Part shown: in pieces, positions 37,193-51,156 of the stretch | How the letters are laid out: each line of letters begins with the position of its first letter | Position numbering within the stretch: position 1 is the stretch's first letter | NCBI GenBank assembly: GCA_002269645.1 | Contig: NIVC01000487.1 | Coordinates: 187,825-251,824, forward strand | Direction: 5' to 3' | Length of the DNA stretch: 64,000 bases | From: Macrostomum lignano | Taxonomy: Eukaryota | Program-made: the position numbers and the translations under genes | Notes under the pieces: model-generated | The model's database searches: none | Told to the model about the DNA's origin: nothing | The model's input: only the letters and a program-made list of their open reading frames with translations

Positions 37193-39870
37193 CTACTCCT
37201 GCTTCTGCTCCTGCTGTTGCTGCTGCTGCTGCTGCTGCTGCTGCGGCAGGGCCGCAGACAGCGGAGAGCCAGCCAGCTCGAACAGCTGCTGCAGACCGAC
37301 AGAGCGACCGCCAGTCACCAGCAGCACAATGTTGGCCGACTGCGGCCTGGCCAGCTGGCCCGGCCCCACGTGTCGGCCATAGACAGCGGCCAGAGCGGCG
37401 CCGCAGACCGGCTCAGTCAGCAGCTGGTGCTGGCAAAGGAAGCTGACGCTGGCCCTGGCCGCCTCATCCTGGCTGCAGGTCACCGAGTGCAACGGCTGCT
37501 CGCGGGCCGCGTCCAGCGCCCGCTGGCACGGCCGGCCGACTCCGCCGCCGCCACCACCATCGAGGCAGCCGCCGTTGGTCGTTCGCAGCTCGGCGGCGAT
37601 CACCGGCGTGGTGACCCAGCCGTAGCGCCACAGGCCAGACACGACGCCGGACAGTAGGCCGCCGCCGGACACAGGCAAAACGATAGCGTCGGGCTGTTCG
37701 CCGTTCAACGCCTCGGCGAGTTCGTCAACCAGGCCGCTGTAGCCCGTCCAGACGTCCTCGCTGTCGAACGGATGCAGCAGGCAGGCGGAGCGGCCCAGCT
37801 GGCCGGCCAGCAGCTCCGCTTGGCTGTGCGCCTCGGGCCAGTCGGCGCCGTGCAGCAACACCTGGGCGCCTTCGTCGGCGATGCGAGCGCGAGCCTCTTG
37901 GGCTACGGCGGCATCGTTGGCATTGGATGCGGCTGATTCGGGCAGCACGACGGTGCACTGCAGGCCGAGACGGGCAGCCGAGTAGGCGCAGGCCAAGCCG
38001 GAGTTGCCGGCGCAGCTGCTGCTGGTCACCACCTATTTATTTATTGATTGAAAGTTGATTGAAAAATACAGATAATGTCCTGACTAACTACTGAAGAAAC
38101 GCATGTTGAGTAGCATTAAGATATCGTGTTTTCCTAGAAAGTCCTACAACTGTGACTAAAATTTGTTGCAATAGTTTACAGTTAAAGCGCCATTCAGCTG
38201 AAAAGATACATCTGATTTGCGAAATTTATAATTTTCTTTGCTTTTTATCCTTCACGTCTGAATTTTGGATACTATTGTATGTGTTGTGATAAGTTTTTGC
38301 ATCCCGTTGCAGTCTGCTATCTGGAACAAGCCATTTGCTTTTGGCCATTCAGGCAAAGCATTTTAAACCATCAGCCTGATTATAGTTCTGCCATATTGAT
38401 GCAATAATGTCCTGCCGTCATGATTTTTAAAGGTGAAAGCTTGCAGTCTGCCTGAGGATCAAGAGGTTGGGATTCCCTGAAAGTTAGGAGGTATTAAATG
38501 ACTACCTGAAGGTTGAGAGGTGCTAAATGACTACCTGAAGGTTGAGAGGTGTTAAATGACTACCTGAAGGTTGGGAGGTGTTAAAGGACTACCTGAAGGT
38601 TGAGAGGTGTTAAATGACTACCTGCAGGTTGGGAGGTGTTAAAGGACTACCTGAAGGTTGGGAGGTGTTAAAGGACTACCTGAAGGTTGAGAGGTGTTAA
38701 ATGACTACCTGAAGGTTGAGAGGTGTTAAAGGACTACCTGAAGGTTGAGAGGTGTTAAATGACTACCTGCAGGTTGGGAGGTGTTAAATGACTACCTGAA
38801 GGTTGGGAGGTGTTAAATGACTACCTGAAGGTTGGGAGGTGTTAAAGGACTACCTGCAGGTTGGGAGGTGTTAAATGACTACCTGAAGGTTAGGAGGTGC
38901 TAAATGACTACCTGAAGGTTGGGAGGTGTTAAATGACTACCTGAAGGTTGGGAGGTGTTAAAGGACTACATGAAGGTTGAGAGGTGTTAAATGACTACCT
39001 GAAGGTTGGGAGGTGTTAAAGGACTACCTGAAGGTTGAGAGGTGTTAAATGACTATCTGCAGGTTGGGAGGTGCTAAATGACTACCTGAAGGTTGGGAGG
39101 TGCTAAATGACTACCTGAAGGTTGGGAGGTGCTAAATGACTACCTGAAGGTTGGGAGGTGTTAAAGGACTACCTGAAGGTTGAGAGGTGTTAAATTACTA
39201 CCTGAAGGTTGAGAGGTGTTAAATGACTACCTGAAGGTTGGGAGGTGTTAAAGGACTACCTGAAGGTTAAGAGGTGTTAAATGACTACCTGAAGGTTGAG
39301 AGGTGTTAAATGACTACCTGAAGGTTGAGAGGTGTTAAAGGACTACCTGAAGGTTGAGAGGTGTTAAATGACTACCTGAAGGTTGGGAGGTGCTAAATGA
39401 CTACCTGAAGGTTGGGAGGTGCTAAATGACTACCTGAAGGTTGGGAGGTGCTAAATGACTACCTGAAGGTTGGGAGGTGCTAAATGACTACCTGAAGGTT
39501 GGGAGGTGCTAAATGACTACCTGAAGGTTGGGAGGTGCTAAATGACTACCTGAAGGTTGGGAGGTGCTAAATGACTACCTGAAGGTTGGGAGGTGCTAAA
39601 TGACTACCTGAAGGTTGGGAGGTGCTAAATGACTAAATGAAGGTTGAGATGTATTTAACGATTACCTGAGGATTGAGAGTGAAATAGCGCCATAAACTCA
39701 CGTGAGTGAAGCCCCGCTCAGCGGCCCGCCGCACGGCGTGAGCCATGCCGCGCAGGCACACGGACCCAGTTGGCTGGCAATTCTCCAGTTTGAGCCAAAC
39801 GCGGCAGCCTTTGATGCCCATAGCTCTGGCCAGTGGCCGACTTTCAATCAGCGGAGTCCGCACGTGCAGC
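37193..39870 (-). CDS. L-serine dehydratase/threonine deaminase-like (SDS/SDSL, PLP fold type II) domain, catalytic Lys replaced
   Basis: LHVRTPLIES...VWLKLENCQPTGSVCLRG, SSCAGNSGLACAYSAARLG, HPFDSEDVWTGY, PDAIVLPVSGGGLLSGV, LTEPVCGAALAAVY and VLLVTGG are collinear with animal SDS motifs. Confidence 0.9.
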
Positions 39871-48800: not shown

Positions 48801-51156
48801 GAGACACAGCTACCCTCTCAGATGTTCAGGTGAGACACAGCTACCATCTCAGATGTTCAGGTGAGACACAGCTACCATCTCAGATGTTCAGGTGAGACAC
48901 AGCTACCATCTCAGATGTTCAGGTGAGACACAGCTACCATCTCAGATGTTCAGGTGAGACACAGCTAACCTCTCAGATGTTCAGGTGAGACACAGCTACC
49001 ATCTCAGATGTTCAGGTGAGACACAGCTACCATCTCAGATGTTCAGGTGAGACACAGCTAACTTCTCAGATGTTCAGGTGAGACACAGCTACCATCTCAG
49101 ATGTTCAGGTGAGACACAGCTACCATCTCAGATGTTCAGGTGAGACACAGCTACCATCTCAGATGTTCAGGTGAGACACAGCTACCATCTCAGATGTTCA
49201 GGTGAGACACAGCTACCATCTCAGATGTTCAGGTGAGACACAGCTACCATCTCAGATGTTCAGGTGAGACACAGCTACCCTCTCAGATGTTCAGGTGAGA
49301 CACAGCTACCCTCTCAGATGTTCAGGTGAGACACAGCTACCATCTCAGATGTTCAGGTGAGACACAGCTACCATCTCAGATGTTCAGGTGAGACACAGCT
49401 ACCATCTCAGATGTTCAGGTGAGACACAGCTAACCTCTCAGATGTTCAGGTGAGACACAGCTACCATCTCAGATGTTCAGGTGAGACACAGCTACCATCT
49501 CAGATGTTCAGGTGAGACACAGCTAACCTCTCAGATGTTCAGGTGAGACACAGCTAACCTCTCAGATGTTCAGGTGAGACACAGCTACCATCTCAGATGT
49601 TCAGGTGAGACACAGCTACCATCTCAGATGTTCAGGTGAGACACAGCTACCATCTCAGATGTTCAGGTGAGACACAGCTGCCATCTCAGATGTTCAGGTG
49701 AGACACAGCTACCATCTCAGATGTTCAGGTGAGACACAGCTACCATCTCAGATGTTCAGGTGAGACACAGCTATCCTCTCAGATGTTCAGGTGAGACACA
49801 GCTAACCTCTCAGATGTTCAGGTGAGACACAGCTACCCTCTCAGATGTTCAGGTGAGACACAGCTACCATCTCAGATGTTCAGGTGAGACACAGCTAACC
49901 TCTCAGATGTTCAGGTGAGACACAGCTACCCTCTCAGATGTTCAGGTGAGACACAGCTACCATCTCAGATGTTCAGGTGAGACACAGCTACCATCTCAGA
50001 TGTTCAGGTGAGACACAGCTAACCTCTCAGATGTTCAGGTGAGACACAGCTACCATCTCAGATGTTCAGGTGAGACACAGCTACCATCTCAGATGTTCAG
50101 GTGAGACACAGCTACCATCTCAGATGTTCAGGTGAGACACAGCTACCATCTCAGATGTTCAGGTGAGACACAGCTACCATCTCAGATGTTCAGGTGAGAC
50201 ACAGCTACCATCTCAGATGTTCAGGTGAGACACAGCTACCATCTCAGATGTTCAGGTGAGACACAGCTACCATCTCAGATGTTCAGGTGAGACACAGCTA
50301 CCATCTCAGATGTTCAGGTGAGACACAGCTACCATCTCAGATGTTCAGGTGAGACACAGCTACCCTCTCAGATGTTCAGGTGAGACACAGCTACCATCTC
50401 AGATGTTCAGGCGGGTCCAACGTTACTCTCTTGGCACTCTAATCTCACCTGCAGCCCATTGGTGTTCATGATAGCCCGCTCAGCGTTGCTCTTATCGTCG
50501 AAGGTGACGAAGCCGACGCCCTTGGACAGACCCGTGTTGGGGTCCGTCAGCACCCGGATCTGCACCAGCTTGCCAAACCGAGAGAACAGCGCGTTCAAAT
50601 CGGCCTCAGTCCAGGTGCGCGGAATTCCTGACACGTACAAATTGCCCGGATTGCGCAACGGTAGGGCACCACCGCCGCTGCCGCCACCGCCTCCGCCACT
50701 ACCTCCGCCGCCGCCTCCGCTGTGCCGCTCAGCCCGCGGCATCTGCGGCAGAGGCAGCGGCGAGCCGTCGGGGCCAACGAAGCCGGCGCAGGAGCTGCTG
50801 CCGGTGGCGGCGTAGGCAACTCGCAGCTTCTTGTTGCCTAGCCGCATGCCGTGGAACTCGCCGATGGCCTTCTCGGCGTGCTCCGGGAACAGGAAGTCTA
50901 CGAAGCCGTAGCAGAGCGAGGCGCCAGTCTGCTTGTCGCGCACCACTTTGTGAGTGCGAATTGGGCCGACCTTTTCGAATAGGGCGCGCAGATCCTCAGT
51001 GTCGAATGTCTGTGGCAGATAATTGATGATTAGGTTAGTGCGGCTGCGGTCCTCGTGGGACTGCTGCTGCTGCTGATGCTCCTGCTGTGGCTGGCCAGCG
51101 CCTCTGCCCAGCTGGGCCTCCAGCATGCCACTTGGCGCCGATTCCTGCTGCAACAT
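37193..51156 (-). CDS. Predicted fusion protein: two Sxl/ELAV-type RRMs + Gly/Ser linker + serine dehydratase-like domain, about 785 aa
   Basis: Exons (minus) 51156-50449 (phase 0), 44288-44044 (ends phase 2, GG|GTGAG), 40266-39702 (starts CAG|A, completing GGA; ends phase 0), 38032-37193 (stop TAG). Total 2358 nt with one open frame. No stop codon in the RRM frame before the donor at 44043, and no other RRM-gene terminal exon was seen. Confidence 0.75.
38490..39640. repeat. 29-bp minisatellite (AAATGACTACCTGAAGGTTGGGAGGTGCT)
   Basis: About 39 units in the intron inside the SDS-like domain. Confidence 0.95.
40415..41995. repeat. Compound GTCT-based array: about 43-bp unit changing to a 20-bp unit (TTAGTGTCTGTCTGTCTGCT)
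   Basis: Direct inspection; switch at about 41290-41370. Confidence 0.9.
42738..42890. repeat. (CT)n dinucleotide microsatellite
   Basis: About 75 perfect units. Confidence 0.98.
43290..44030. repeat. 32-bp minisatellite (GATCAGACACCAGTCCTCTCCCAGCTCTGTTA)
   Basis: About 22 units next to the donor at 44043. Confidence 0.95.
44044..51156 (-). CDS. Sex-lethal/ELAV-family tandem RRM1-RRM2 portion
   Basis: TNLIINYLPQ (Sxl/ELAV RRM1 hallmark), RNP1 LCYGFVDF, NLYVSGIPR, RNP1 KGVGFVTF, and the split last strand NGLQ|GPEWPAPLLVKFAED. Confidence 0.9.
44330..45040. repeat. 15-bp minisatellite (CAGTACACAGACCCT)
   Basis: Direct inspection. Confidence 0.95.
46805..50410. repeat. Biphasic 3.6-kb array: 33-bp unit (about 20 copies) switching at about 47460 to a related 31-bp unit (about 95 copies)
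   Basis: CTCAGATGTTCAGGTGTGCAGCATGCCTACCCT, then CTCAGATGTTCAGGTGAGACACAGCTACCAT. Confidence 0.95.

Follow-up and report, generated by a model that had tools for sequence, protein, structure and literature searches.

A two-RRM, ELAV-like protein with a serine dehydratase-type domain in Macrostomum lignano and other flatworms

The window analysed here is a stretch of 64,000 nucleotides (nt) from the flatworm Macrostomum lignano (contig NIVC01000487.1, positions 187,825 to 251,824; GenBank assembly GCA_002269645.1), and its subject is a gene in which two RNA recognition motifs (RRMs) are followed, in the same reading frame, by a domain of the serine dehydratase (SDS) type. All gene coordinates are window positions, and every exon and intron of this fusion gene lies on the minus strand (Table 1). 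Four open segments with a GC content of 0.64 to 0.79 lie within AT-rich, repeat-laden DNA, and their splicing gives a single open reading frame (ORF) of 785 amino acids (aa). The published cis-splice motifs of M. lignano are GT[G/A]AG for the donor and CAG for the acceptor; all three donors of the gene fit the former, and all acceptors end in AG.

The preliminary description of this DNA placed the end of exon 2 at a GG/GTGAG donor in phase 2 and the acceptor of exon 3 at 40267, with the divided codon GG/A restoring a glycine. These coordinates and the frame were borne out by the window sequence. The same description stated that exon 2 has no stop, which is wrong, as a TGA stands in frame across the donor and an older gene model terminates there. 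Since the donor overlaps this TGA, an RRM-only isoform is possible. The 33 codons upstream of the first ATG of exon 3 had been called coding-like, and their composition agrees with this: GC is 0.69 and GC at third codon positions 0.76, whereas GC in the true 5' and 3' flanks of the gene is 0.27 to 0.28. Scored with the gene's own codon usage, these codons reached a log-likelihood of +15.5 bits in the fusion frame, compared with -19.2 and -25.9 in the other frames.

Table 1. Positions of the parts of the fusion gene and of other features in the window
Feature	Position	Strand	Description
Exon 1	51156-50449	-	708 nt; begins with ATG 51156-51154; donor CAG/GTGAGA; Q-rich N terminus, RRM1 (~51036-50806), Gly-rich inter-RRM linker of ~55 aa, initial three-quarters of RRM2 from 50643
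Intron 1	44289-50448	-	Chiefly minisatellite arrays: 31-nt unit, 115 copies, at 46821-50411; 15-nt unit, 47 copies, at 44329-45035
Exon 2	44288-44044	-	245 nt; acceptor ..atccag/G; donor GG/GTGAGC; phase 2 end; final beta-strand of RRM2 (PLLVKFAED, 44267-44244), then start of Gly/Ser/Ala-rich hinge
In-frame TGA	44042-44040	-	Within exon 2 donor (GGC GGG TGA); retention of intron 2 would give an RRM-only protein of 318 aa ending in ...GFGSGG
Intron 2	40267-44043	-	32-nt array at 43296-44019; (CT)75 at 42740-42890; 20/40-nt array at 40417-41982
Exon 3	40266-39702	-	565 nt; acceptor ..gccgcag/A; donor CAC/GTGAGT; remaining hinge, including 33 coding-like codons upstream of first ATG (40166-40164); N-terminal part of PALP/SDS-like domain from ~39869
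Cys488 codon	39758-39756	-	TGC; at the position of the pyridoxal phosphate (PLP) Schiff-base lysine; QPTGSVCLRG vs QPSGSFKIRG in canonical SDS
Intron 3	38033-39701	-	29-nt minisatellite, 41 copies, at 38476-39669
Exon 4	38032-37193	-	Acceptor ..aaatag/G; stop TAG 37195-37193; rest of SDS-like domain and poly-Q tail
Phosphate loop SGGGL	37672-37646	-	First Gly of tetraglycine loop replaced by Ser (canonical GGGGL)
Gly run	37549-37523	-	Replaces deleted conserved S-I-A-T-S-L-G loop; sole low-confidence part of the domain model
EPVCGAAL motif	37414-37391	-	EPxCGAAL type, in exon 4
Upstream neighbour gene	55879-59808	-	714 aa; weak pentatricopeptide-repeat matches (PPR_3, E 1e-6); adjacency conserved in the paralogous contig
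Coding-looking segments	14650-21300	-	Tyrosine/Ser-Thr kinase fragment 15413-15769 (E 4e-13); weak SH2-like exons 18930-19472 and 21008-21283
Troponin-like exon	8006-8290	+	E 2e-12
Weak rhodopsin-type seven-transmembrane segment	896-1477	-	E 1e-4

All three introns are largely minisatellite (units of 29, 20/40, 2, 32, 15 and 31 nt, in up to 115 copies), and some arrays begin only tens of bases from a splice site. Intron 2 also holds about 1.1 kb of unique sequence, which is 99% conserved between paralogous copies of the gene. An Rfam scan of the window gave no match.

The fused reading is the existing GenBank annotation of exactly this locus. The annotated locus (L004, assembly Mlig_3_7) is contained base for base, at 100%, in the reverse-complemented window sequence. 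The protein annotated for it, PAA82197.1 (BOX15_Mlig003997g4, flagged "partial", 781 aa), corresponds to residues 5 to 785 of the 785-aa model and includes the junction of exons 2 and 3 (...GFGSGG/FGGLSR...). The BOX15 annotation is not ab initio but merges a genome-guided StringTie/TACO assembly with a de novo transcriptome (PMC5730564). The TBONE pipeline used for it cuts transcripts into genes at experimentally mapped spliced-leader (SL) trans-splice sites and poly(A) sites, and ORFs were called with TransDecoder (PMC5730564). These models were built from RNA-seq assemblies, and the introns in them go back to spliced RNA. The chimera of about 785 aa that the preliminary description proposed, with two RRMs, a Gly/Ser hinge and an SDS-like domain, is thus identical from residue 5 onward to a transcript-derived coding sequence (CDS), and the annotation of a second locus has the same form.

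A tandem acceptor, TTGCAG/CAG/, is present at 51153-51145, just after the genomic ATG, and the GenBank CDS begins directly behind it at 51144. The true start codon may be donated by the SL (giving M-ESAPSG or M-QESAPSG) rather than being the genomic ATG; an SL AUG would be in frame here. Donation of the AUG at this acceptor would explain the "partial" flag of the GenBank CDS.

Duplications of recent date are present in M. lignano, and two further copies of the gene were found. The second copy (L001; PAA73106.1) is about 98 to 99% identical and is annotated with the identical fused CDS arrangement. Upstream of the poly-Q tail it differs from the window copy by 11 synonymous and 3 nonsynonymous substitutions, and the four that fall in the RRM exons are all silent. 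The window copy extends over 13.95 kb and the second copy over 10.85 kb, and array lengths vary between paralogous copies. The third copy (L003, NIVC01001348.1; PAA69090.1/A0A267F5P6, named "L-serine ammonia-lyase") is annotated as a complete SDS-only protein of 429 aa, whose start corresponds to ATG 40166. In this copy all four exons are retained in order, with a 1-nt deletion between the acceptor of exon 3 and the ATG, where it reads GGGG and the other two copies read GGGGG (L003:9902-10001, near window position 40220). The SDS-only annotation arises because the deletion breaks the fusion frame and the ORF caller falls back to the ATG. It was therefore rejected as evidence for a separate gene. 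The deletion may be a real, pseudogenising frameshift or a PacBio homopolymer error.

The exons might instead belong to two adjacent genes, perhaps in an operon. An RRM-only gene would then end at TGA 44042-44040, with its poly(A) site in intron 2, and an SDS-like gene would be SL trans-spliced at 40267 and begin at ATG 40166, the fused CDS being an artefact or minor read-through. M. lignano resolves its operons by SL trans-splicing; about 15% of its genes are organised in operons, and 30% undergo trans-splicing. The in-frame TGA inside the exon 2 donor and an AATAAA about 870 nt downstream of it fit such an arrangement, as do the older RRM-only model (P0166), which terminates in ...GFGSGG at this TGA, and the SDS-only annotation of the third copy, although the latter is explained by the deletion in its G run. 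The SL is 35 nt long and ends in ATG; joined to 40266, this ATG would be out of frame and would meet a stop after about 36 codons. The acceptor CCGCAG at 40267 departs from the [T/C]TNCAG motif of trans-splice acceptors, and the 99 nt before ATG 40166 are coding-like in the fusion frame, whereas real untranslated regions here have a GC content of 27%. TBONE left the fused models uncut at two loci, and the fused architecture is kept in distant flatworms, with micro-introns in Opisthorchis. Two separate genes are therefore improbable.

On the single chain, Pfam detected two RRM_1 domains (E 2e-36) and one PALP domain (E 2e-52), the combination that the preliminary description had named as a check. 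The RRM tandem matched HuR best among PDB entries (E 5.9e-44; range for HuR, HuD and HuC, 6e-44 to 3e-40). The match to Sxl structures was eleven orders of magnitude weaker (E 9e-33). The top non-flatworm database matches of RRM1-RRM2 were all ELAV-like, with 36 to 39% identity and E values down to 1e-48, and no Sxl protein was among the 75 best database matches. Of the Sex-lethal/ELAV-type assignment made earlier, the ELAV/Hu part consequently stands and the Sxl part does not. The M. lignano RRMs keep the RNP motifs of the ELAV type (LIINYLP and LCYGFVDF in RRM1, LYVSGIP and KGVGFVTF in RRM2).

The protein resembles the ELAV/Hu proteins (HuR/ELAVL1, HuD and HuC; Elav, Fne and Rbp9 of Drosophila; melav1 and melav2 of M. 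lignano) in its best RRM matches, in its canonical RNP2 and RNP1 and in the hinge that follows RRM2. It differs from them in having no RRM3, a PALP domain being present in its place, and in its Gly-rich inter-RRM linker of about 55 aa, compared with about 10 aa in ELAV. After the hinge, Pfam found no third RRM, as only two RRM_1 stretches were detected and the post-hinge region is PALP. Sxl shares the restriction to two RRMs and the alignable tandem; however, it is the weaker match and itself carries no C-terminal enzyme-fold domain. M. lignano also has ordinary three-RRM elav genes (PMC2795745). Identity of the present gene with melav1 or melav2 was rejected, melav2 being a three-RRM protein of 422 aa (PMC2795745).

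The hinge (residues ~250 to 445, about 200 aa) is rich in Gly, Ser and Ala and is predicted to be disordered; in the full-length AlphaFold2 (AF2) model, which is of low confidence throughout, it was modelled without structure. Met352, encoded by ATG 40166, is aligned to a Leu in a hinge motif that is weakly conserved in the trematode proteins.

The C-terminal domain, of PLP fold type II, matched human SDSL (E 1.2e-45), human SDS (E 1.3e-44) and rat SDS from end to end, and its Pfam PALP match spans positions 5 to 295 of the 295 in the profile. Modelled alone with AF2, the domain gave a predicted local distance difference test score (pLDDT) of 82.8 and a predicted template modelling (TM) score of 0.83. 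The best Foldseek matches of this model in the PDB were rat and human SDS and SDSL (1pwe, 1p5j and 2rkb), with TM scores of 0.80 to 0.84. The Pfam, SDSL and structural matches together corroborate the earlier proposal that an SDS-type PLP-enzyme fold occupies the position of ELAV RRM3. The Asn, Gly-loop and EPxCGAAL motifs are recognisable.

The active site departs from that of SDS and SDSL. The Schiff-base lysine of the G-S-F-K-I-R-G motif is absent, and the Cys codon at its position is identical in all three M. lignano copies. In addition, two residues are inserted before the Asn of the Asn motif in exon 4, a Gly of the phosphate loop is replaced by Ser, and one conserved loop is deleted (Table 1). 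A further difference from SDS and SDSL is the location of the domain behind an RNA-binding module. The change of lysine to Cys and the deleted loop make an enzymatic role, or a sensing role through covalent PLP, unlikely in M. lignano, and the SDS-like domain is probably a pseudoenzyme.

M. lignano separately has a canonical stand-alone SDS (P0016, 324 to 337 aa) in several copies, with the lysine and every motif intact. One UniRef entry (A0A1I8GLH6, P0170, 629 aa) is this stand-alone SDS doubled head to tail; the probable cause is a merging of tandem duplicates or an artefact of annotation.

A profile made from an alignment of the M. lignano protein with three proteins of trematodes was searched exhaustively against 1.84 billion representative proteins, and the 14 best hits were without exception from flatworms. 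RRM_1 and PALP occur on one chain in the trematodes Paragonimus, Dicrocoelium, Opisthorchis, Trichobilharzia, Calicophoron and Schistosoma mekongi, in the cestode Mesocestoides and in the monogenean Cichlidogyrus. Fragmentary orthologue models were found in Fasciola, Heterobilharzia, Protopolystoma and Rodentolepis. Anoplocephala yielded a PALP model of 528 aa, which groups within the cestode fusions in the tree described below, and a 786-aa isoform that was outside the Pfam scan. The preliminary description suggested looking for this architecture in other flatworms; it is present in at least 12 flatworm species, and the best non-flatworm match has no RRM. That match is a nemertean SDS-like protein carrying PDZ domains. 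The family appears to be restricted to flatworms, many planarian and non-flatworm proteomes possibly being missing from the collections searched.

Several of the orthologues are named "L-serine ammonia-lyase" or "Serine dehydratase" in databases (Paragonimus heterotremus, 960 aa; Opisthorchis felineus CRM22_001736; Mesocestoides corti A0A0R3U5Y8; Cichlidogyrus casuarinus), and they share the order RRM-RRM-hinge-PALP. RRM1 is nearly invariant across the family (EDRSRTNLIINYLPQ, GASLCYGFVDF and LRVAYA), and the M. lignano protein carries this signature. The neodermatan orthologues differ from the M. lignano protein in being longer (715 to 971 aa) and in having a degenerate RRM2 with an insertion of about 30 aa and without RNP1; most of them keep the lysine. 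The trematode members share a hinge motif, PRAIIRNK...LELLDLLD. Near the C terminus, some 20 aa before the end, they also have the strongly conserved motif LNPHDLVNFSKLLA, with the variant LHPDTLVNLVGLLS in Protopolystoma (neodermatan set P0002-P0004, P0156, P0157, P0167, P0009 and P0012). The M. lignano protein is without this motif and ends in poly-Q.

In genomic DNA of O. felineus, a stretch of 1.9 kb takes in the final part of RRM2, the hinge and the start of PALP with the catalytic-lysine motif. The canonical introns between these parts measure 29 and 83 nt and leave no room for a second promoter. Intron positions were set aside as evidence, as those of M. lignano and Opisthorchis do not coincide.

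A misjoining of unrelated loci in the assembly, or a merging of neighbouring genes by the annotation, would also yield such a gene model. The genome is very repetitive and duplicated, the introns are filled with minisatellites and the CDS is flagged "partial". However, exon order and spacing recur in three separately assembled contigs, the flag fits an SL-donated AUG at the TTGCAG/CAG acceptor, and independent annotations in more than 10 other species show the same architecture. A chimera of this kind is extremely unlikely.

The relationship of the SDS-type domains was analysed with a neighbor-joining tree of 56 PALP domains with 200 bootstraps, a simple method. The neodermatan fused PALPs formed one clade in 99.5% of replicates. 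All fused PALPs, including that of M. lignano, formed one clade in 69%, with the stand-alone SDS of M. lignano as its sister. Together with the orthologous RRM part, this clade is most simply read as the result of one fusion that preceded the divergence of Macrostomorpha and Neodermata. The family (Macrostomorpha, Monogenea, Cestoda and Trematoda) most likely has a single origin, in which an ELAV paralogue was joined to a flatworm copy of SDS.

Two other proteins were met in the searches. The nemertean protein (Tubulanus polymorphus XP_074641592.1, P0015) has two N-terminal PDZ domains and a fully canonical PALP and represents an unrelated spiralian fusion of the SDS fold. A 660-aa protein from an AT-rich genome (P0020, MetaClust UPI00060488A0) has a canonical SDS domain and an N-terminal extension of about 290 aa with an RRM2-like remnant, AEPMWPLALELSVI (compare APEWSAPLRLRII). 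This protein is probably one more helminth member of the family, its gene model being truncated.

Most trematodes and Cichlidogyrus retain the lysine. At its position Trichobilharzia szidati has E, Mesocestoides V and Anoplocephala T, and in these three the Asn or Gly-loop motifs are likewise eroded. The aligned sequences indicate that the catalytic lysine was lost independently in M. lignano, in T. szidati and in cestodes. Since the domain was retained although the lysine was lost in several lineages, its conserved function would not be catalysis.

The protein could nevertheless be a working bifunctional enzyme, that is, an RNA-tethered or RNA-regulated L-serine/threonine dehydratase. The full SDS fold, the largely retained Asn, Gly-loop and Cys (N1) motifs and the lysine and canonical motifs kept in most trematode orthologues and in one monogenean would accord with this. 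Database names and a cestode study also treat a flatworm SDS/threonine deaminase homologue, possibly a member of the family, as threonine deaminase. Cys at the lysine position in every M. lignano copy, the deleted S-I-A-T-S-L-G loop, the presence of a separate canonical SDS with its lysine intact in the same animal, and the retention of the domain in Trichobilharzia and two cestodes after loss of the lysine all speak against it, and we consider this explanation very improbable.

ELAV/Hu proteins are core post-transcriptional regulators in which RRM3 mediates multimerisation, and the SDS enzymes of rat and human are homodimers. Since SDS enzymes are homodimers, homodimerisation is the most plausible noncatalytic role of the SDS-derived domain. 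The RRM tandem would bind U- or AU-rich RNA as ELAV/Hu proteins do, and the SDS-derived domain would provide self-association, the task of RRM3 in ELAV. The domain may also bind a small molecule noncovalently. The outcome would be a dimeric post-transcriptional regulator, and in the lineages that keep the lysine (most trematodes and a monogenean) PLP binding or catalysis by the domain may persist. The bacterial MocR/GabR regulators combine a nucleic-acid-binding domain with a dimerising effector module of PLP-enzyme fold, GabR being of fold type I and binding DNA, and IRP1/aconitase is a metabolic enzyme fold reused in RNA regulation, with IRP1 binding RNA by the enzyme fold itself. These systems are similar in concept only, without homology, in that they pair a nucleic-acid-binding module with the fold of a metabolic enzyme, for which catalysis is not required.

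Taken together, it is highly likely that positions 51156-37193 hold one four-exon gene encoding a protein of about 785 aa with an ELAV/Hu-type RRM tandem, a hinge and an SDS-type pseudoenzyme domain, and that this protein belongs to a flatworm-wide family; it would most plausibly act as a dimeric post-transcriptional regulator. Several points weigh against this interpretation. RNA support for the junction of exons 2 and 3 is drawn from the annotation procedure and not from reads, and a search of the low-complexity-masked junction peptide against transcript-derived (Logan) proteins returned only stand-alone SDS matches. An older annotation of M. lignano (P0166, UniRef A0A1I8I0G4) is an RRM-only model and the third copy is annotated as SDS-only. 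Given the TGA in the donor and the SL-resolved operons of M. lignano, the fused mRNA could be accompanied by RRM-only and SDS-only mRNAs. The fused and stand-alone PALPs of M. lignano grouped together in 31% of bootstrap replicates, so that a single origin is only moderately supported. The full-length AF2 model, made with a four-sequence alignment, had a mean pLDDT of 37 and therefore gives no information on contacts between the domains. Finally, RNA binding, dimerisation and ligand binding are proposals that reach beyond the observed gene structure, RNA-derived annotation, conserved architecture, fold and active-site losses.

A more far-reaching possibility is that the whole flatworm phylum has an ELAV-derived regulator, its RRM3 replaced by an SDS domain, which couples amino-acid or PLP status to the fate of mRNA. 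The domain would then be PLP-competent or catalytic in most trematodes and a pure sensor or dimeriser in Macrostomum, in cestodes and in Trichobilharzia. This possibility is tentative and on the whole rather unlikely. If it were true, these proteins would form a natural, hard-wired link between RNA, enzyme and metabolite, in a protein that is specific to flatworms and that the hosts of the parasites lack.

The gene model and its orthologues are already public as hypothetical proteins or automatically named enzymes, and the architecture was not previously described in the literature found. Full-text searches (serine dehydratase with RRM, flatworm, ELAV or Schistosoma, and the tags Mlig003997 and Mlig010810) turned up neither the architecture nor the locus tags. 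For the family as a whole, "L-serine ammonia-lyase" is an unsafe name, and it is probably wrong for M. lignano, Trichobilharzia and the cestodes. A 2025 study of Echinococcus called EmuJ_001093200 ("EmTD") a threonine deaminase on reciprocal BLAST alone; the gene was almost unexpressed in metacestodes of E. multilocularis, and its protein was undetected by proteomics (PMC11795093). If EmuJ_001093200 is a cestode member of the family, in which the lysine is absent in Mesocestoides and Anoplocephala, its assignment as an enzyme would be wrong. Such misnaming could be carried over into metabolic reconstructions and into lists of drug targets for parasitic flatworms.

The repeated loss of the lysine with retention of the domain marks a pseudoenzyme that does something else. 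M. lignano is amenable to RNA interference and transgenesis, so that this function is directly testable. By the exchange of ELAV RRM3 for the fold of a metabolic enzyme, this conserved lineage offers a natural experiment on the role of the third module in these regulators.

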